A stretch of DNA of 64,000 bases from Zancudomyces culisetae HAW-14-8 (lineage: Eukaryota; Fungi; Kickxellomycota): contig JBNJNM010000011.1 of the NCBI GenBank assembly GCA_052426225.1, positions 3,906,001-3,970,000 on the forward strand. Direction: 5' to 3'. Below the pieces are notes generated by a model. That model ran no database searches and had not been told where the DNA came from. It saw nothing but the letters and a program-made list of their open reading frames with translations. Position 1 is the stretch's first letter. Each line of letters starts with the position of its first letter. Made by a program: the position numbers and the translations under genes. This document shows positions 38,291 through 51,800 of the stretch, piece by piece.

Positions 38291-41200
38291 ATGAACGCAG
38301 AGCTAGTGGAAATAGCACGGATTTTCGAACAAACATATGATCCACAGGAGATAATCAGAAAAGCTGCTGAAGAAAAGGTTCGACACCTGGAAAGCACGAT
38401 AGGAAATAACAGCAATGGAAACGAACGGTTCTTGTCGAAATTGATATATCTATTGAAGGAGCTTGGTGCAGTGGGTTTCGGTGGTACTGGCCAGGAAGAG
38501 TATCAACAGAAGCAAGCTGCGGCACAGGTTCGCCTGGCAATCAGCATATATTTTAAAAATATTCTCAGAAGGCGGTGGAACGTGTTTAAAAACGATGCTG
38601 ATTATGATGAAGTCCAAGCGGGAAATTTACCTGGTGCTAACATGGATTTGGTAAATCCGAACCAGAATGGTATCTGTGAGGCTGAAAAAGCGTATATTAA
38701 GCAAGAGATATTCCATGTGATGCTGAACAATTACAACGATAAACCAGTGCTTGCTCAATTAGTCAGCTGTTTAGGGACAATAGTGCGCGAGGCAGAATTT
38801 CCACAAAGCTGGCCAGAATATCTGGTAACGTGTCGTCAGCTCTTGATAACTGGAAGTGGTGATATGAGTGTAGAAAGGTCCGAAAGTGCGATTAAAAACG
38901 AGCTGACAAACATGTACATAGGGCTACTGGGTGTATACCAAGTCTTACAAATGTACAGGTACAAAGACAAGCAGGATGAAATGGCAAAAAGGATTGTTGA
39001 CGAGATTTGTACCGAACTTATCCCAATAATTGGCGAAATCGTTCGGCAACAGCTAGATTGTTTGTATGTGCATGGTGGGGATGGGAGTGCGAGTGTAAGC
39101 GAGAATATAAATACAAACGCAAATTCCAGTTTGGAAATGCTGCAGAGTTTGGAGCCTAAAAGACAACAAGTAGTAAAAATGGCACTCAAGGTGTTTTACT
39201 CGAGTGTGTGTAACGAGTTGCCAACCATTCTCATGGAAACTAGAGACGAGCTGGTAAGATGGGGAAATCTATTGATACGCATTATACTGACCCACACAAA
39301 GAATAATGGTGGACTACAAGATAGGGATGCTGTAGAAAACTATGATTACAGCAGTAGCTATTATGAAAGGGGCGGAGAGATAGAAACGGAAAACAGATCA
39401 TTAAAATGGGCACAGCGTAGCATAAACAAAATATACAATAGGTATGGTAATCCTGGCGTATTAATGCAGGGATTAGGGGTTTCGAAAAGACATAAACGGA
39501 AATATTGGGAGTTTGCAAAGCTGTTTAGCCAAGAGTTTGCACCACGGATCCTGATGGTGTACTTAAAGGGGTTGGAGGCGCATTATGCAAGCACCAAGGG
39601 CTTTAAAGGGGTTGGAATGGATGGATGTTTAATGGCAGCAAGGAGCCGGTCGATCATATATCGATATATAAGAGACTGTGTAGAAGATAAACAAATGTGG
39701 AAGTTAATACAGGATGAGTTGGGGGTGATTATAGATCGGCTAATACTGAAGGAGTTAGAGCACTCGTATTATAAATACGAGCTTGGTGGTCAGGATGAGA
39801 ATGAAGACAAGCAGGCAGAGGTTGAAAGGGTTATAAATAGCATCCTTGATCCATCATACACATTCACAAACTCATCTTCGTCTTCAACGGTGTACTACGA
39901 ACACGAAGAAAGCCGAAACCCAACACTCGCTGCTATGGCCGTGTTGGAGACGATTTGTGTAGAGCGCCAGAAAAGTTCAATGGAATTTCTTGTGAATTAC
40001 GTGGTGGAACGGATTGCAACATCCTACCAGAATAGTCATGAAGGTAGTGCAGGTGAAAGATATGCAGCACTAGCAATATTGTCTACAATTTCTGATGGGA
40101 TAAAAGCAATGGTCAGAGGAAATGGAGATTGCAAGAGCAGAGGAGCTGAGGAAAAGAATAACAGCAAAGTGATCGAGGTTATTACCCACCAAATAGAACA
40201 TGTAGTAATTCCCGAAGTTTTTTCGGAGTTTAATCTCGATAATGGTGGCTACAATAGGAAGGAAATGCGCGGTGGTATGAATATATTGCGAATAAAGGCA
40301 CTAGAAATAGTAACACGATACTCGGGTCTTTTGGTCGAATATATGGCAAATCCGCAGGGCTTGGTACTACAGCTCTTGGAACAGATTACAGGTAACCGTC
40401 GCGAACGAATGGAGGTTCGAATACTCTCTGCGCTTGCAGTAAACGAACTGATTACAAAAATAGACAAAGCAAACAGGAAAGCTAGAAATGAGAGCGCTGA
40501 GGGAATCGAAACAATTGTGGTACACATTATTAGGTATTTGATGGAGATGCTAGAGGAGACAGTAAAACTTGTGAACGCAGGTAGCACAGATGCAAATGCA
40601 GAAGTAATTGTGAGTACGAATATGAATACGAATACGAATAATGTGGAGGTATTATTGATCGAGTTGATTCAAGAACTGGTAGAAACATACAGCGGGAGGA
40701 TTGGTAGAGAGTATATTTTGCAACTTGTGCAGGGTCTAGCGACTAAAGTCGATTTACTGGTAAACAGCTTATCTTTGCGTCTTAGTAAACTCGCCCAGCA
40801 ACAACACCGAAATTTGGGGGCAGCGGGAGGAGTTATTGATGGTAATGATGATGATAGCGATGGAGATGAAGACGAGGAGAAAAAAGAACAAGCCGTAGAA
40901 ATGATTAAAACAGTTTTTGGGACTATCCAGATACTCTTGGAACCGCTAGAAAATCACCCGGAACCGATACTCCTGGGAAATAGCGAGAACAACAAAAGTG
41001 GCAGTGTGGATGACAATAGTAAGAGGCCAAATGGAAATAATGGAGAGAGTGGGGTAGACTGCATCCAACATATCAAAGGGATAGTATACCCAGTGATTTC
41101 CAAGATTATTGAACTGGAAATATACGAATGTTATCAGATTGCGATTTCGGTGTTCGATAATTTGGTATTCATGACATCCTCGCCACTATCGGCAATAAAT

Positions 41201-42712
41201 GGTGTTGTTAGCGGAAATTATGAGAACAAGGCACAAGTAGAAGAGTTTGAAGTGCATTTGTTCCGGCTAGTTTTGAATAAAGTAGTAGGGTTGTTTGATC
41301 CAGGAAACGAAAATATTAGTTGGGAAACAGCGGATCAAATTATGGAAATTCTCTTTGAAAGTATGGTTTTAGTCAACACAAAGCTTTTGAATCTACATCA
41401 CAGAGTCAAAATTAGTGGCCAGTTAAACGTACAGGGGGATCAAACTCTTGGATATGGTGAAAACTTTGTAAGAGATTCGAATTCTGGTTTGGGTCTGGAT
41501 CTGGATTCTATAACCATGAGAATCAATATGGATCTGTACTATAATGAAGATGGGGCAGTGTTTCAATTCATGATAGGGATCATTGATTTGCTATTTTCAC
41601 AGGGCGGAAATGGAGGAGAATGGAGAAAAGTAATCAGTAACTATTTTGGTTCTAGTGGTATGGATGACGATGACAGTGAGGGTGAGGGTGATAACGAGAT
41701 GGTGGATACAATTTGTGAAATTGTGCAAAATATAATATTACTATATTCAATATCCACCAAACTGTTTAACATGGATAATGTGGGTATCGGAGGCGAGAAG
41801 TACGTAGACCGACAAGTGGTTGAAAAATATATTCGGTTGATATTACCACTGCTGTTCTCATCGGCTGCACACCCAAATACAGACACAATTACAAACATTT
41901 CTGGTACAAAGAACCGAAGCGCAGGTGTAAAAAACCAGAGTATGTTTTTAACGGTGCTGTCAATTCTTACGTTCAACACTTACCCATACCAAGTTGCAAA
42001 TGTAGGTTTGAATGTGCATCAATCAATGAGTTTTTTACTGGGACTAGCTTCACATTCAGGATACCAAGCAGTAATTGAAAGATCAATTCAAAAATACGCG
42101 GGAAGAAATAGAATGAGACGGATTATTGACTTGAAATTAACAATAGTGGCATTATTGGATTATATTCAACTTTGCCTTTCCACTGTAAATAGCGGTGGCG
42201 AATTGAAAATGGTAAAGATGGTAAAATATGTAATAGATTGCTTTGGTAGACTACCAAGAGCCATATTGCAGTATAACTCTTTGGTTCGTTCATCATCACA
42301 ACCAGGTGGAGGCAAAACTAATAATAACCGATACGGGGGGGATGCGGATGAAGAAATTGAGGATGTAGTGAATCTAATGGAAGTTCATCAGGAAGAAGGC
42401 GATCAAGACGACATGGATGACTATGATGAATTTGGTGTTGAATACGATGAGGAAGGAGGGGATGGGATGGATGAAGAGTACAGTGAAGTAGATGAAAACG
42501 ATATAGATGTTCAAGAAGAACAGCACGAACAGCAGATTGTGGATAGCAAGCATATATTGTTCGACTTTGATGTATACTCGTACTTTAAATCGTTTTATTA
42601 CAAGTGCTATTATCCAAAAATATCGTGTTTGAATAGAGAGGTATTGGAACAAATGGAAAGCATTTTAAATAGTGACCAAAGACAGCTTTTATTAGATTTA
42701 ATTAGCAACTAG
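38291..42712 (+). CDS. Importin-beta family karyopherin, importin-7/8 (Nmd5/Sxm1)-like, 1473 aa
   Basis: N-terminal IRKAAEE..L and VRLAISIYFKNILRRRW (IBN_N-like), FPQSWP, KWAQRSINKIYNRYGNP and acidic C-terminal loops. Confidence 0.8.
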   Translation: MNAELVEIARIFEQTYDPQEIIRKAAEEKVRHLESTIGNNSNGNERFLSKLIYLLKELGAVGFGGTGQEEYQQKQAAAQVRLAISIYFKNILRRRWNVFKNDADYDEVQAGNLPGANMDLVNPNQNGICEAEKAYIKQEIFHVMLNNYNDKPVLAQLVSCLGTIVREAEFPQSWPEYLVTCRQLLITGSGDMSVERSESAIKNELTNMYIGLLGVYQVLQMYRYKDKQDEMAKRIVDEICTELIPIIGEIVRQQLDCLYVHGGDGSASVSENINTNANSSLEMLQSLEPKRQQVVKMALKVFYSSVCNELPTILMETRDELVRWGNLLIRIILTHTKNNGGLQDRDAVENYDYSSSYYERGGEIETENRSLKWAQRSINKIYNRYGNPGVLMQGLGVSKRHKRKYWEFAKLFSQEFAPRILMVYLKGLEAHYASTKGFKGVGMDGCLMAARSRSIIYRYIRDCVEDKQMWKLIQDELGVIIDRLILKELEHSYYKYELGGQDENEDKQAEVERVINSILDPSYTFTNSSSSSTVYYEHEESRNPTLAAMAVLETICVERQKSSMEFLVNYVVERIATSYQNSHEGSAGERYAALAILSTISDGIKAMVRGNGDCKSRGAEEKNNSKVIEVITHQIEHVVIPEVFSEFNLDNGGYNRKEMRGGMNILRIKALEIVTRYSGLLVEYMANPQGLVLQLLEQITGNRRERMEVRILSALAVNELITKIDKANRKARNESAEGIETIVVHIIRYLMEMLEETVKLVNAGSTDANAEVIVSTNMNTNTNNVEVLLIELIQELVETYSGRIGREYILQLVQGLATKVDLLVNSLSLRLSKLAQQQHRNLGAAGGVIDGNDDDSDGDEDEEKKEQAVEMIKTVFGTIQILLEPLENHPEPILLGNSENNKSGSVDDNSKRPNGNNGESGVDCIQHIKGIVYPVISKIIELEIYECYQIAISVFDNLVFMTSSPLSAINGVVSGNYENKAQVEEFEVHLFRLVLNKVVGLFDPGNENISWETADQIMEILFESMVLVNTKLLNLHHRVKISGQLNVQGDQTLGYGENFVRDSNSGLGLDLDSITMRINMDLYYNEDGAVFQFMIGIIDLLFSQGGNGGEWRKVISNYFGSSGMDDDDSEGEGDNEMVDTICEIVQNIILLYSISTKLFNMDNVGIGGEKYVDRQVVEKYIRLILPLLFSSAAHPNTDTITNISGTKNRSAGVKNQSMFLTVLSILTFNTYPYQVANVGLNVHQSMSFLLGLASHSGYQAVIERSIQKYAGRNRMRRIIDLKLTIVALLDYIQLCLSTVNSGGELKMVKMVKYVIDCFGRLPRAILQYNSLVRSSSQPGGGKTNNNRYGGDADEEIEDVVNLMEVHQEEGDQDDMDDYDEFGVEYDEEGGDGMDEEYSEVDENDIDVQEEQHEQQIVDSKHILFDFDVYSYFKSFYYKCYYPKISCLNREVLEQMESILNSDQRQLLLDLISN

Positions 42713-42769: not shown

Positions 42770-45700
42770 CTAGGAAAGGTTTAAAGATAGAATTCTGGAC
42801 TCGGTGTTGCTAGGTATAGTGCTGCTATCAGAAAATGTATTGTGTTTGTAAACACCCAGTAATGACTTGCTCTTTTCATAAAGCTTTTGCTTGAGACTAA
42901 TCACAATAAACTGATTAATTGGGCTACCAACCGATGGCGGAACAGACGATGAGTTGGAGATGTACCGTGCAAGCATGTTGAGGTTATTGGTATCGAGCGC
43001 AGCATCTACCTCATCCAAGACATAGAACCGGCTCCCGTCGCCATCAATGGTTGTGGAGCTGGTAGCTGGTAACAGCTTTGTGCGGTATGACTGGATAGTA
43101 AACACAAGAGCCAGTGCAGCAATCGTTTTCTCACCACCACTGAGACTTTCAATATCGCGGAACCGTTTCAATGGCGGCATAACATGGTACTTGATACCGC
43201 CACAGTATGGTTCGACTCCAGCACCACTGGCTGTGGCTGAATTAGCACCAGAACCGCCGGTATTTGCGGATGCCGTCGGCGTCTCGAGTGTGAGGTACGC
43301 AGTGCCTCCCATGGGGAATAGATTGGGAACAATGGTCAGCTGCTTGTAGAAGGCATCGATGTGCTGGGCTAGGTAGTTGTACATGTCAAGGAATAGCTCA
43401 GTACGCTTACGCTTGATTTGGAGAAACGCAGACGATGCAGATTTGGCGTGGTTGCGAATCTTGGTGAATTCGTGATCAATGGCAGAGAGTTTGGTTGATA
43501 GCACCTTGGTTTTGGCCTCCAAGTGGCCCAGGTTGACACCTGTGGTGGCAGTGGCTTGAGCTACATTGACACTTCCGCCAGCACCAACAGAAGACTGCAA
43601 CATCTTTCGGTACTGGGCAATCTGAACCTCCAGCTGTTCGATCATCTCCCTCAACGTTGCTTCGGCATTATCGGATGCAAGCCTTCCCTTGGTTTTGGCC
43701 GATAAAACAACGCTGATCTGCTGGTGCTCTTGAGATTGGTTGTTAAGTACCATCCGTTTAAGACTATCAACGTCAACGTCCTTTAGACTCTTGACAACCC
43801 CCGCCTCTGCCCCCTTTTTACCTTTGCTGCTACCTTCAGAGGCCGAAAAAGACAGCTGGATTCCCTCCATTCCTTCATATTTGGCTTTAACCAACAACCT
43901 GTACTTCTCCAGTCGTAACCTTTCTAATTGCGCAGACTTGTTCCCTACCAGTCGTTTGCCGTCTCTTATACTTTCTGCCAATAAACCACTGATGTTCTGT
44001 GTGAGTTCGAGAATTTTTTGCTGTAGTTCAGCGTATGTTTGTCTGGCAGTTTTGTATTTGGCCTTGGAATCGTTTAACTGTACCAACAGGTTGTTTTGCA
44101 ATGTATTGGTTTCCAGCTCATCAGCCCTAGCTGTAAACTGCTCAATCTGGTCTTTTGTAGCCTGGATTTGAGCATTCAATACATTTAGTTGATCCGACAT
44201 CTGTGATTTGAGATCATCTTCAAACGACCTTTGCGTCTGCAGCTTGTCAATCTGCGATGATATGCGTGCAATGTTTGCGTGCTGCTGCTGCTGTAGCTTG
44301 GTGGCATTTATTACAGCATCCTCGTACGATTCAATGCTATCAAAGTTATATTTTTGGCAAAATGCAACAAACGGTTTGTTGACAACGCTCTTAAGCTCCT
44401 CAATCTTTAACTCGAGATCGATATTTTCTTGTTGTGAAGGCAGCGAAGATGCGAGGATATCATGCTTGTGTTGGAGTTGCTGCTTCTCGCTAAGAAGTGT
44501 TTGCAGCCTTCTTTTGCTGCCGCTCAGTATATCCCGAGCCATTTCAAGTCTTTGCAATGTATCATCTGTTGTAGAAGGCATTGTGCCCGGAGCGCTTGCT
44601 GATGGGGAAGACTGCTGAAGTAGGAGAAGCAGCTTGGCCTTGCGCTGGCTCGTTTGGTTTATTTGGGCTGCCAATTCTTCGCGGGTTTGGATCAATTTGT
44701 TGAGTCGTTTGGCATCCGAGGCCATATCGCTGGTACCATGTGCTTGTGAAGCAGAATATCCCCCACTAATGTTACCATTTCTTTCTATCACAGTTCCATC
44801 AAGAGTCACGACTTTTACTTTCGTATTTCTTCTCGAAGAGCGCTGGAATTGTTTAGCCTGCTGTATATTTTCACAAACCACCGTATTTGCGCAAACATAC
44901 TTCATCACTTGGTCGTAGACCATATCATAACGAATGACTTGTGTTGCTCTCTTGATTCTAATACCCTGTAGACCGAAATCCACATCGACATCCATATCCA
45001 TACCCATACCCACACCTCCATCGTCATCTATATCCATACTTGCTGTCGATGCCGATGCGTTGGACATGATGTCAAGTGGCAAAAACGTGGCCCTCCCAGC
45101 CCGTTGCTCTCGCAAATATCTGATACACTCAATAGCAGTTTGCTGTGTATCCACCACAATCGCGTCGCTGTTCCTACCCAACACCACACGGACCGCTTCA
45201 TCATATTTACTCTGTATAGGTGCACAAATATCCGCCACTCGGCCATGTACTACCAACCTGCCACCTGCGTTATTTGCACCATTGTTGTTTTGGTGGAACA
45301 GTCTTCTCAAACCCGCTATCATCTCGGCCCGTTTTGCCTCTTGTCTGTTATCTGCCATTTTTCGCTTGGTCTCCACAATTTGCTCCAAGACCTTTCCTAA
45401 CTTTTCACTTGCCTCCTGCTCCAAAACCTCAAGCCGCTCATGCTCACGCTCATTTTTTTTGCGCTGCAACTCAAGCTCTTTGTATTTCTGCTCAAGTTGC
45501 TGCACAGTTTGTATGTCACCATCAATCTGCTCGTTTTGTGAATCGACTTGCTGCTGTTTTTGCTGGATCTGTTGGGTTAGGTCTTGAATCTGCTGATTTA
45601 CCTGTTCACTCTGTTTTGCTAGCTTGGATACCTGTTTTTGCAAAGTTTGCAGCTCGAGGTTTTGCTTTGAGTATTTGGTTTCAATCTCCGCCTTTATTTG

Positions 45701-46912
45701 ATAATACTTGGTTCTCATTTCATCTCTTTCTTTTCCTGTCTTTCCCTCTCGCTCTTTCTCATTTTCTCTTTCTTGCTGCTCTCGCTCCTGCTCAGAGCGT
45801 TGTTTGACGCGCTCAAGCTCGCTTATCTCCTGTACAAGCTCTTGTAGGCCACTTTCTTTGCGCTGTAAATCCCGCTCGATTTCACGCTGCTTGTTTTCCT
45901 GATCTTTCAGCTTGCGTTTTGTTGCTATTACTGCTTCACGTAACCCAACTAAAACCGGTTGCTGCTCTTCAATCTGTCGCTCAACCATCCGAACTGTCTT
46001 ATCATCTTTAATCATTTGCTTGTAGGCTTTTGCGGATTCCCTTTTGTACCCGTTCAACTCCTGCTCTTTTTGCTCCATTTCACGTTCTTTGCTCTGAATT
46101 GCATTAGTATCATCATCAATCTCTTGTATTAAAGAAACCTCTTTTTGTTCACCCTGGTGAATTAGCAGCCGCATGTACTCGGTTTCCATTCGGCTAATCT
46201 CTTGTCGCTTGCTCTCGTATTCCTCTTGCTCTTTTTTCATCTCCATAAGCGACTTTAGCTCACTCGCAAGCGCCCTTCGCTTACTAAAAAGTAGATTACT
46301 CTGCTCAGCTGCCGCTTCCTCCTGTCTTCTTAGCTCTTCGTACTGTTCCCTATATTCGGCCGAGCCTGAGACGCGCTCTACCAGTCGTGTCAACTCCATT
46401 GGTGATTGTGATGCAATTGATTCTACATCCCCCTGAAACACCAGGAAGTTTCGTGCTTTTACCATCACGCCTTGCCGTTCCAGCTCAGCATTGTACTCTC
46501 CAAAGCTTACCACTCCGCCATCTATCCTGTACTCGCTCCCACCAGTTATCGTTACAATGCGTTGAAATTTCTTCTCTATAATTTCTACCTCTTCCGGTTG
46601 TCCTGTCTCTTCAGCTTGGTTTACCCTTTCTCCCACCCTTAGTTTTTTCGATTTTATAACCACGGATACCATTGCTCGCTTTATGGTCTCTCTCTTGCTT
46701 AAACCGGATCCTTTGTAGATCAGATCTTTTAATTGTGCTGATCGCAGCTGTGTTCCCTTTACCCCCAGCACAAAGCTTATTGCATCCATCAAGTTACTCT
46801 TTCCTGACCCATTAGGTCCCACGATCGAAGTAAATGAGCTAAATGGCCCTATTACCTGATGGCCTTTGTACGATTTAAAGTTTTCCAACTCGATTCTATC
46901 TATTATCCCCAT
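42770..46912 (-). CDS. SMC1: Cohesin subunit SMC1
   Basis: ENFKSYKG, Walker A GPNGSGKSNLMDAISFVLG, NFLVFQGDVESIA, hinge GRATFLPLD and GNISGG, PPLKRFRDIESLSGGEK, and Walker B/D-loop VLDEVDAALD. Confidence 0.95.
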   Translation of the reverse strand: MGIIDRIELENFKSYKGHQVIGPFSSFTSIVGPNGSGKSNLMDAISFVLGVKGTQLRSAQLKDLIYKGSGLSKRETIKRAMVSVVIKSKKLRVGERVNQAEETGQPEEVEIIEKKFQRIVTITGGSEYRIDGGVVSFGEYNAELERQGVMVKARNFLVFQGDVESIASQSPMELTRLVERVSGSAEYREQYEELRRQEEAAAEQSNLLFSKRRALASELKSLMEMKKEQEEYESKRQEISRMETEYMRLLIHQGEQKEVSLIQEIDDDTNAIQSKEREMEQKEQELNGYKRESAKAYKQMIKDDKTVRMVERQIEEQQPVLVGLREAVIATKRKLKDQENKQREIERDLQRKESGLQELVQEISELERVKQRSEQEREQQERENEKEREGKTGKERDEMRTKYYQIKAEIETKYSKQNLELQTLQKQVSKLAKQSEQVNQQIQDLTQQIQQKQQQVDSQNEQIDGDIQTVQQLEQKYKELELQRKKNEREHERLEVLEQEASEKLGKVLEQIVETKRKMADNRQEAKRAEMIAGLRRLFHQNNNGANNAGGRLVVHGRVADICAPIQSKYDEAVRVVLGRNSDAIVVDTQQTAIECIRYLREQRAGRATFLPLDIMSNASASTASMDIDDDGGVGMGMDMDVDVDFGLQGIRIKRATQVIRYDMVYDQVMKYVCANTVVCENIQQAKQFQRSSRRNTKVKVVTLDGTVIERNGNISGGYSASQAHGTSDMASDAKRLNKLIQTREELAAQINQTSQRKAKLLLLLQQSSPSASAPGTMPSTTDDTLQRLEMARDILSGSKRRLQTLLSEKQQLQHKHDILASSLPSQQENIDLELKIEELKSVVNKPFVAFCQKYNFDSIESYEDAVINATKLQQQQHANIARISSQIDKLQTQRSFEDDLKSQMSDQLNVLNAQIQATKDQIEQFTARADELETNTLQNNLLVQLNDSKAKYKTARQTYAELQQKILELTQNISGLLAESIRDGKRLVGNKSAQLERLRLEKYRLLVKAKYEGMEGIQLSFSASEGSSKGKKGAEAGVVKSLKDVDVDSLKRMVLNNQSQEHQQISVVLSAKTKGRLASDNAEATLREMIEQLEVQIAQYRKMLQSSVGAGGSVNVAQATATTGVNLGHLEAKTKVLSTKLSAIDHEFTKIRNHAKSASSAFLQIKRKRTELFLDMYNYLAQHIDAFYKQLTIVPNLFPMGGTAYLTLETPTASANTGGSGANSATASGAGVEPYCGGIKYHVMPPLKRFRDIESLSGGEKTIAALALVFTIQSYRTKLLPATSSTTIDGDGSRFYVLDEVDAALDTNNLNMLARYISNSSSVPPSVGSPINQFIVISLKQKLYEKSKSLLGVYKHNTFSDSSTIPSNTESRILSLNLS

Positions 46913-47843: not shown

Positions 47844-47937
47844 GTACGTTTTACAATAATCAATCATAAAGTACAAATATATATATTCTACTACAAAAAG
47901 CACATTAATAAAAAACTCCTGAAATCCACTAATACAG
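47844..47937 (+). other. Probable 5'UTR intron of the selenoprotein H gene
   Basis: AAG|GTACGT donor, CACTAAT branch-point-like motif and ACAG acceptor 11 nt before ATG 47949. Confidence 0.55.
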
Positions 47938-47948
47938 CATTCAAAGAA

Positions 47949-48768
47949 ATGGTGGTGACGCGAAGCCAAGGCAGGGATCAAACCCCTGTCGCTAGCAAAC
48001 CACAGCTTGATGGAACCGAAAAGGTAAAAAAGCCTGCTGGATCTGTCACAAAACCAAAAAAGTCAACAAAATCAGGGAAATCTCCAAAAAAGGCAAAAGA
48101 AGCAAAAGAACTCAAAAAAGAACCCGAACTGTTCAACGAACAGCCCAAAGATAACCAGACTAGTACCACCACACAACTCGGTGATCAATCTCAGAACGTA
48201 AATGTCTCACCACCGGCCCATACCGATCAGCAGCCGGATATGCCAACAAGTTCCACACTGCCTGAGAAAGACCCTACTAAAATGGAAACGGAATCTGAAT
48301 CTGATACCAAAACTGAGCTGGAGTCAAAGACACTGACACCTACCGTAAAGGCTACAGAGAAGATTGAAAAGGCTGGTGAAATTGAGCCAGAACAGCAAGA
48401 TAGCAAACTAACTCTTTCTATCGAACACTGCACCAGATGACGAGTCTTTTCGTCGAACGCCAAACGTGTCATCGCGGCTGTCGACAAGCTTTACCCAAAC
48501 AGATTTACATTTGTTGTTAACCAAAATAAGCCCCGAACAAACTACTTTAATATTACCATATCTTCTATATGCAAAGGTACAGTTATATTCTCAAAATATT
48601 CAAGTAATCGAGACAATGTACACTTTTATTATAAGATAACATAAAATAATACATTTAGAGTCAACCATATGGTACGGTAATAAGCTAGGCCCTCCAAGAA
48701 AGCTCAAGTTCCCTGAAATCTCCACCCTGGAGCCTCTTATTAGTGCATTTATTGATTCCTTGAACTAA
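47949..48768 (+). CDS. SELENOH: Selenoprotein H (Rdx/thioredoxin-like fold, CxxU); exons 47949-48576 and 48659-48768; in-frame TGA 48438-48440 read as Sec164; 245 aa
   Basis: Read-through gives LSIEHCTR-U-RVFSSNAKRVIAAVDKLYPNRFTFVVNQNKPRTNYFNITISSICK|ESTIWYGNKLGPPRKLKFPEISTLEPLISAFIDSLN*. This is colinear with vertebrate SelH as I recall it (VVIEHCTS-U-RVYGRNA...VNPTKPRRGSFEVT...LWTGIKKGPPRKLKFPE). The intron 48577-48658 (GTACAG...TAG) restores the frame. Confidence 0.93.
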
Positions 48769-48772
48769 ATAC

Positions 48773-48861
48773 ATATATAACCTGTTGAACAGATCCCCAA
48801 CTAACCATGCTTACTGCTAAAAAAAAGAAGAGAGTGGGAAGGGGTCTAAGGAATTATATGT
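48773..48861 (+). promoter_or_regulatory. Candidate non-canonical SECIS-like 3'UTR stem-loop of the SelH gene
   Basis: Folded by hand: ATATATAA/TTATATGT, CCT/AGG, AGATCCC(48791-97)/GGGGTCT(48841-47), CCAT/GTGG and an apical A8. TGAA at 48786-89 lies just below the main stem. Confidence 0.45.
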
Positions 48862-51800
48862 TCATGGTGATCGCTGTTCTAGTAGTCATATTTTAATTAT
48901 GAGGAAAATATATACCCTGTCGTTTGCTTTTGAATCATTTCATCATTAAGGATTTGGTACAAAGCAGATGCCATTGTTTTTCACTGTAAAAATCTTAAGC
49001 AGAGAAGGTAAACTATACTCCCATTATCACTTTTTTTATTTTAATATCGAATATACCAATTACTTGAATAACCTACACCATTGTACGCATTTACAAGGTG
49101 CGAATGATATTTAGCTAAAACTCTTGATTTGGGTATTCATAGATTTGCACCTGCAGTTTTAGGCTGTCTGTGTATACGTCTTTTCCTTCCGCTTAGCAGT
49201 GTATTTTCTGAAAACTTATACTCTATACGAGTCAGGAGAAATACGAATCTCCTTTAAATTATATGGTTATAGAATAGCATCATTAGCTGGATTTTTCTTT
49301 TTCTCTTTTTTTAAGGAATAAAAGATAAGTTAGCTCTTTTACGTATTTGATGGAGTAATGCCAGTTAAAGTCAGATAAACGATTCAATTGATATACTTTT
49401 CTTGTAGTGCATTATGAAAGTCGTTAGTCTACTATAATTTTTTTTTGTCAAGATTCAAATTAAATAGTATGGCTGCTATAGCCTTAGTTACACTTTCAAC
49501 ATGTGTAACAACCACATATGGAGCGGCAATTGTATAAATACTAAATTGAGTTGTACGCTGTATCTTTTATCTTTAATCTCCAGCTCAACTAAAGTCAAAA
49601 AAGGTATCACCAAAACGTACCAAAGCGTATATCTCACTAATTCAGCTATTAACTGTGTCATTTTTTGCGCCCGAAGTCATTGGCACGTTTTCATTTTTCT
49701 GCTGCCACCTTTTCCTGTTGTGCTTACCTTATTTCTAATGTATGTTCCAAGGATAAAAAAACCAATAGCTGTTGCCTTTCTTTCAACACACCTCCCCCCC
49801 TTCATTGCTGTCACGCTAAAAACACCTTACTATCTAAAAAAAGGCTCCAAATGAATATGCAAAACAACACTTTGTCCCCTTTTATAAATAACTAATATAA
49901 AACGCTGTATTTTACAGATAAGTTGCAGCACATAAAAAAGAAGCTGTACTAGAAAAGATATTGGGAAGAGGGTGAAATTAATAATAGTATGCCATGAAAA
50001 CTGTACCTACTTGATTCCTGACTCATATTCAACGCTGTTTACCCGCAATTGTCTATAGGCATCTTTGTCTTTTAGAAGAATGAGAGTGGTAAAAAATATC
50101 CAAAACCTGCCGATGATTTTGCTGCAGCCTCCCCCCCCCCCACAACAAATTTATGTGCTGGTTACCTGTTTACACGAGTTCACCGTGAACGTTTTCCTGT
50201 TTCATGGTATGGGACTGGGGCATAGAGAGTATTTTTACAAAATACTCGGCACGAAATGGGTATAAGAATACGAAAGAGAATCCTGTTTCTGATCATTTGA
50301 TACGACTTATGTTTCGGTGGATCCTGGCATGTATATCTCGTACTAATTAGTCAGTGGTTTCACTAAGTTAAAATTTAACTGTACCATACTTTATTAGTGC
50401 AGTACCCAGCTTTATTCAAACAGGATATATGTGGTTATTCAGCCATACTGTTTTTTTGACAAATATAATCCTGACTGTATTGTACCTCGCCTTTTTTATC
50501 TCTCTTCAACAAAGATGGCGAGAAACAGGTATTTTGATTTTGGGGTAAGCGACTGAAGTTTTGAAACAAAATTTACATATTTGTTTATTTGCTTAACTTT
50601 AGTAATACTGTTACAACTACTGCTTAGGTTACAGCTTGTTAATGACAATCACCAGGTGTATAATATCACCCTTTGCATCTACTCGTTACACTTCTCTCCT
50701 CTCCCCCACTATTTTTTGAAGATAATACCCTCTCCCTGCGTAACTCGTTTTTACATGGTTAGTTTTCGTATATTATAAAATAATGTGGCCAAGGTGTGAG
50801 CATTATGGGAGAGACCATAACTGGGAAGCAGTTAAATTTGATTTTTCAATAAAACAAGAGACTTGTTTTTTATACATAACCAGAAGAGTGCAGCACTTTT
50901 TCTGGTCAACTAAACTTGGAAAATTCTCAACCCGTGTGTAGATTGCTAATTTATTTTTTTGGCGGAGCCTACAGGATATTTATAGGCCCATTACTTGTTT
51001 AGCAACTCTCCCTGTTGAAAGCATAAAAAAATTTAATTTGAGGATGGGTGCATGGTGGGCAACATGCTTTTTTTTAGAATAGCGCCGAATCATCAAATTA
51101 GAAGGAGCAGTAAAACACTATTTTCTCGCCTAGTGTTCATCACACCCTGCAATATCTATTTACAATTTCTTTCTATCCCTTTAAACATAAGGTTACATTA
51201 GCAACTACCAACAAATTCTACGCAATCGAAGCCCATTAGCAACCATTCAAGTTAATACAGTGTACGCCATTAATAACAAAACTTCAAAAAGATTATAATC
51301 ACGATATGTATAATGGATATGACTGATCATTCGTATATAAGGGTAGCTTGTGGATATTCGAAGACATTACAGGCTAAATTCTTGCAGAATTATGGGCTTT
51401 AATAAAAAAATGCGTCCGAAATCTTAAGATAAAGTTTCTACATGAAACCAACCTCTGATAGATCATTAAAATTGATTACTGCTCGTCAATGCAGACAGAT
51501 TGAATTGTAACATGAAAACATTCCAGCAAGGAAACGGAATAAAACTGCACCTTAGGAAAACACATGCATGAGCTGCGGAGTTTTATAGTCAAGCACTTAG
51601 TGTAGAGCTCAGTTTATCAGCAATTTCTGGTTTTTCTAGAATACTGGAATTGAGTTGTACTTTGCTCTAGTTTATGTACACGTGTTATCAGTAGGCATTT
51701 TTTCATTTAATTTCCTTTTGAGGGAAGGAGATTGGTTAGGAAATAACTGGCAAAATGGATGGACGAAATCCATATAAGAGTTTTCCAGAAAATGGCGTAA

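Follow-up and report, generated by a model that had tools for sequence, protein, structure and literature searches.

A two-exon SelenoH gene of Zancudomyces culisetae with an in-frame UGA probably read as selenocysteine and without a canonical SECIS

Z. culisetae is a fungus of the insect gut that belongs to the Harpellales. The window analyzed here is a 64,000-nucleotide stretch of the Z. culisetae HAW-14-8 genome (GCA_052426225.1, contig JBNJNM010000011.1, positions 3,906,001 to 3,970,000 of the forward strand). It carries a predicted SelenoH (SelH) gene with the following features, given in window coordinates.

47949 to 48576, + strand: SelH coding exon 1 (628 nt), comprising the N-terminal extension, the CxxU motif, and the first half of the predicted Rdx domain
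47949 to 48410, + strand: low-complexity N-terminal extension of ~150 aa
48429 to 48440, + strand: C161-T-R-U164 redox motif, the TGA at 48438 to 48440 being the putative selenocysteine (Sec) codon
48577 to 48658, + strand: predicted SelH intron of 82 nt, GT-AG, phase 1, matched in position in the genes of relatives
48659 to 48768, + strand: SelH coding exon 2, ending in a TAA stop; the conserved Trp...GPPRKLKFP motif lies at 48670 to 48713

The coding sequence starts at ATG 47949 and reads TGC-ACC-AGA-TGA at 48429 to 48440, directly after Glu-His. Past the TGA, 45 codons remain open up to the GT donor at 48577. The intron, which ends with AG at 48658, has a GC content of 22%, compared to ~40% in the exons on either side, and exon 2 encodes a W-x-G-x-K-x-GPPRKLKFP motif closed by the TAA at 48768. 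By simple arithmetic, the 628 plus 110 nt give 245 aa and a stop, with the TGA as codon 164 and located 136 nt from the exon junction; the conserved Trp lies four residues past the codon interrupted by the phase-1 intron. All three stop codons, TGA, TAA, and TAG, close other long open reading frames (ORFs) in the window, as previously noted for TGA; the genetic code is thus unchanged. A candidate intron of 94 nt with a GTACGT donor is found in the 5′ untranslated region (UTR) (window positions 47844 to 47937), its CAG acceptor being 11 nt 5′ of the ATG. An SMC1-like gene (42770 to 46912) is arranged head to head with SelH across a gap of 1,036 bp and is convergent with an importin-beta-family gene (38291 to 42712), neither of these two genes having introns.

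The 163-aa ORF that ends at the TGA gave a single database match, the Z. culisetae hypothetical protein OMH81657.1 (AX774_g4883), identical at 160 of 163 residues (98%) and ending at the same residue. It represents the same locus; its entry stops at the TGA, without the predicted redox domain and exon 2, whereas the SelH gene described here continues. The NCBI protein entry is wrong, cut at the Sec codon, precisely the truncation that the first-pass annotation had expected from automated annotation. In the assembly of a second strain, GCA_001969505.1, the TGA is again present, the intron sequence is identical, and exon 2 is intact and encodes the same protein sequence.

Homology searches were run exon by exon with window pieces of 35 to 45 aa. 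These were too short to yield a match in Pfam, TIGR02174, PDB, or two large protein searches, and exon 2 alone as a query did not retrieve any related locus; the Atlas clusters nearest to a window piece were Rdx (0.80 to 0.84), taken here as a lead only. A degenerate DNA pattern for the exon 2 motif, in contrast, recovered 40 metagenome loci, none of them human-looking by their short translations. In 13 of these relatives (about ten distinct), the frame was open back to a C-x-S-TGA motif with which C161-T-R-TGA aligns. The distance from TGA to Trp was 47 to 59 residues in the relatives, and 50 in seven of the 13 as well as in the SelH gene examined here. A profile built from the part of the 13 relatives lying 5′ of the search motif matched exon 1 with an E value of 3e-11, its Sec column falling on the TGA; the next best match in the window had an E value of 1.6. 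Since the profile excluded the search motif itself, the exon 1 match is not attributable to chance. Searched against the whole genome, a profile of the post-TGA parts of the relatives matched the SelH locus alone, in both exons, showing that the gene is single copy. Three of five post-TGA parts of the relatives matched Pfam Rdx above the cut-off. The C-terminal W-x-G-x-K-x-GPPRK-x-KFP motif (48670 to 48713), 50 residues past the Sec position, is invariant in the alignment (A2), and such a motif at ~50 residues from Sec is the SelH signature. Comparison of transcript-like and genomic contigs of the relatives revealed that they too have a phase-1 intron, which interrupts the codon lying four residues ahead of the Trp, as in the gene studied here, and this common position supports both the reality of the intron and the orthology of the genes. 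Together, these data bear out the initial identification of the locus as SelH, the two-exon model of 245 aa with its intron at 48577 to 48658, and the placement of the TGA at the Sec position of CxxU, where the relatives also carry C-x-x-TGA. SelH family identity by phylogeny has been reported (bioRxiv 10.1101/314781).

Like mammalian SELENOH and Drosophila BthD of the Rdx family (PMC13437758), the predicted protein combines CxxU, a probable Rdx-type domain, and a charged N-terminal extension; it is, however, 245 aa long, compared to 122 aa. The Lys-rich part of the extension spans aa 1 to 60 (28% K+R), the rest being acidic and then Pro/Ser/Thr rich. Charged N-terminal extensions of 46 to 146 aa are common among the relatives, and the 160-aa extension seen here is therefore not special. 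Unlike mammalian SELENOH, aa 1 to 160 contain neither an RKRK nuclear signal nor an AT-hook, a Lys-rich stretch being present instead, and a canonical SECIS is also missing. Judged by the two absent motifs, the predicted protein is not assigned to mammalian-type SELENOH.

The genome encodes much of the Sec machinery that the first-pass annotation had named; the one component not found was SBP2. A single tRNA-Sec gene scored above the Rfam cut-off (C12:2376020-2376107, 57.9 bits, anticodon TCA), SecS was above the NCBIfam cut-off (C14:532619-534278), and eEFSec was located at C6:499.5-502 kb, with human eEFSec as its best PDB match (E = 2e-18). SPS (C21:462-463.5 kb) has its own in-frame TGA within L-K-G-U-G-C-K, the U of which is the established Sec site of SPS2. 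This TGA region (L019:1937-2032; G000:C21, − strand) is likewise without a canonical SECIS. For PSTK, there is a weak candidate of 440 aa at C21:3237 kb, for which the eukaryotic PSTK model was the best match (E = 1.6e-8, far below the cut-off). Neither Pfam L7Ae nor a motif pattern detected SBP2 in the genome; the protein has been described as highly diverged and is listed for the Z. culisetae transcriptome (PMC12611240, supplementary file 2). Two sets of matches were rejected: the top selB-family matches (L013 and L014), which are mitochondrial EF-Tu and not eEFSec, and the KTI12-family matches considered for PSTK, which are KTI12, APS kinase, FAP7, and others. Several genes (mitochondrial EF-Tu, a ribosomal S12-like gene, and others) occur twice in near-identical form on contigs C6/C12 and C19/C21, probably representing uncollapsed haplotypes or duplicated assembly segments.

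A further two-exon gene at L084:2146-2752 (G000:C11:4824645-4825251, + strand), with a candidate intron at L084:2464-2587, encodes a protein with a single hydrophobic segment and a middle part rich in Gly/Ser, terminating in four Gly, TGA, Gly, and TAA. By its sequence it looks like SelK/SelS; its pieces gave no Pfam SelK/SelS match, and no canonical SECIS was found with it. The gene is absent from the published Selenoprofiles list for Z. culisetae (PMC12611240) and from the seven families of bioRxiv 10.1101/314781, and could be a third, unreported selenoprotein.

How the UGA would be marked for recoding was addressed by searching for a SECIS. Rfam detected none near SelH and none above the cut-off genome-wide. 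A strict SECIS scanner identified no canonical SECIS 3′ of SelH or SPS, although it was positive for 24 of the 32 related loci that had sufficient flanking sequence and gave a single match in 128 kb of window. Fourteen of these elements were used to build a covariance model, with which held-out relatives scored 24 to 37 bits and everything near SelH, SPS, and the third candidate gene scored ≤11 bits. A canonical SECIS is absent from SelH, a point that the first-pass annotation had not raised, and SelH is not classed as a canonical SECIS-dependent mRNA. Four of the related loci (L052, L058, L061, and L068) have a canonical SECIS ~100 nt 3′ of a pair of tandem TGA codons that close the frame past the C-terminal helix; both TGAs are probably mere stops. 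Two hairpins 3′ of SelH show partial SECIS features.

48771 to 48861, + strand: 3′ hairpin 1, with a U-UGA-A / GGA-A core-like geometry, a 7-bp G+C helix, AA ten bases past the UGA, and an oversized apical part
49096 to 49152, + strand: 3′ hairpin 2, with a 10-bp lower helix around AUGA-N9-AAAA-N21-GA and a poorly paired upper helix

The stability of hairpin 1 was not significant (z = −1.26), and the three differences between the strains there are all in loops. Hairpin 2 had a z of −2.74, picked as the best of many windows, and scored 6.5 bits with the SECIS model (E = 5). The relaxed scanners choosing both hairpins were tuned after these had been seen and gave 0.11 to 0.17 matches per kb elsewhere. 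Neither hairpin has a counterpart 3′ of SPS, and no motif is common to the sequences 3′ of SelH, of SPS, and of the third candidate gene. We regard hairpins 1 and 2 as weak, non-canonical SECIS candidates. They may have been described already: the final 2019 paper (Mariotti et al., Nat Microbiol) reportedly covers further RNA structures of these genes. Hairpins over or just past the UGA did not exceed shuffled sequences in stability (z = −0.26 and −0.46), so that there is no support for an SRE-like or bacterial-type SECIS. We consider it rather unlikely that UGA recoding in Z. culisetae dispenses with a canonical SECIS and has the hairpin at 48771 to 48861 or the one at 49096 to 49152 as its working, diverged recoding element; if true, the identity of the fungal SECIS would be directly testable in a culturable species.

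The absence of a canonical SECIS lends some weight to readings of the TGA other than Sec. The codon might be a recent nonsense mutation of a Cys codon (TGT/TGC) in a decaying gene, or the 163-aa fragment might be the sole product, and SelH is indeed missing from the published transcriptome list. The relatives, however, carry TGA and not Cys at this position, and the frame past the TGA, the splice sites, and the motif are all intact. The strains differ past the TGA at three coding sites, two of them synonymous and the third an Arg/Lys exchange, numbers too few for statistics or for measuring selection which nevertheless lean away from decay. The genome, moreover, retains dedicated Sec machinery as well as a second Sec-position TGA in SPS. 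Conjointly, these observations make a pseudogene very improbable. An artifact of sequencing or assembly, or contamination from another eukaryote, can be dismissed for practical purposes, the context of the TGA being identical in the independent assembly of another strain; the contig of that assembly is 98.9% identical to the window across 11 kb, SMC1 neighbor included, and the SelH locus lies on a 5.2-Mb contig.

The UGA might also be passed without selenium, by leaky readthrough with Cys, Trp, or Arg or by means of an intron that begins at a GT 5′ of the codon and removes it. Here too the missing SECIS could be invoked, and in-frame GT-AG pairs flanking the TGA formally exist. The original claim that no GT donor could splice out the TGA thus does not hold literally, in-frame GTs being present (e.g., at 48345 and 48376); its substance stands, in that every such intron deletes the conserved E-H-C motif. 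Leaky readthrough is difficult to reconcile with the ordinary use of TGA as a stop in other ORFs of the window and with the presence of tRNA-Sec, eEFSec, and SecS, for which we know of no other use. Passage of the UGA without selenium is accordingly given little credence, about as little as a pseudogene.

The reading we favor, with a probability of about 0.93 judged from sequence, is that of a two-exon SelenoH (Rdx-family) gene in which UGA would be read as Sec, giving a 245-aa selenoprotein. The relatives' TGA at the same place, the machinery in the genome, and the TGA stops elsewhere agree with the earlier view of a site-specific recoding and not a code change. Following the established eukaryotic pathway, PSTK would phosphorylate Ser-tRNA-Sec, SecS would turn the phosphorylated form into Sec-tRNA using selenophosphate supplied by SPS, and eEFSec would bring the Sec-tRNA to UGA164. 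Recoding would most likely be cued by a diverged 3′-UTR element that a likewise diverged SBP2 recognizes. The product would most likely be a thiol/selenol oxidoreductase operating by Cys161-Sec164 selenenylsulfide cycling. By analogy with SELENOH, it is most likely nuclear or nucleolar, with the basic N-terminal extension as targeting signal. Under selenium shortage, ribosomes terminating at the UGA would yield the 163-aa fragment without the redox domain, and with the UGA 136 nt 5′ of the exon junction, mRNA decay would be possible.

Z. culisetae has been named as a Sec-using species, SelenoH being present in all Sec-using fungi except Gonapodya (bioRxiv 10.1101/314781). Its use of Sec was restated in a later study in which SelH.1.selenocysteine is listed for strain ARSEF 9014, in the genome list and not in the transcriptome list produced with Selenoprofiles (PMC12611240, supplementary file 2). 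According to the discoverers, most fungal selenoprotein genes have no recognizable SECIS (bioRxiv 10.1101/314781). Species, family, Sec-position TGA, and lack of a recognizable SECIS are all as found here and, since the genome has a single SelH locus, the gene in the window is almost certainly the published Z. culisetae SelH gene. Gene, trait, and species are already published; the gene is real, not new, and the trait is rare and not unprecedented, as had been anticipated, with SelenoH already reported from Z. culisetae itself. Few fungi have selenoproteins (nine species reported), which makes the gene an uncommon catch. What it still offers is a way into the question, posed by the discoverers, of how Sec-using fungi mark UGA without a recognizable SECIS, which is relevant to the evolution of recoding and to selenoprotein production in yeast.
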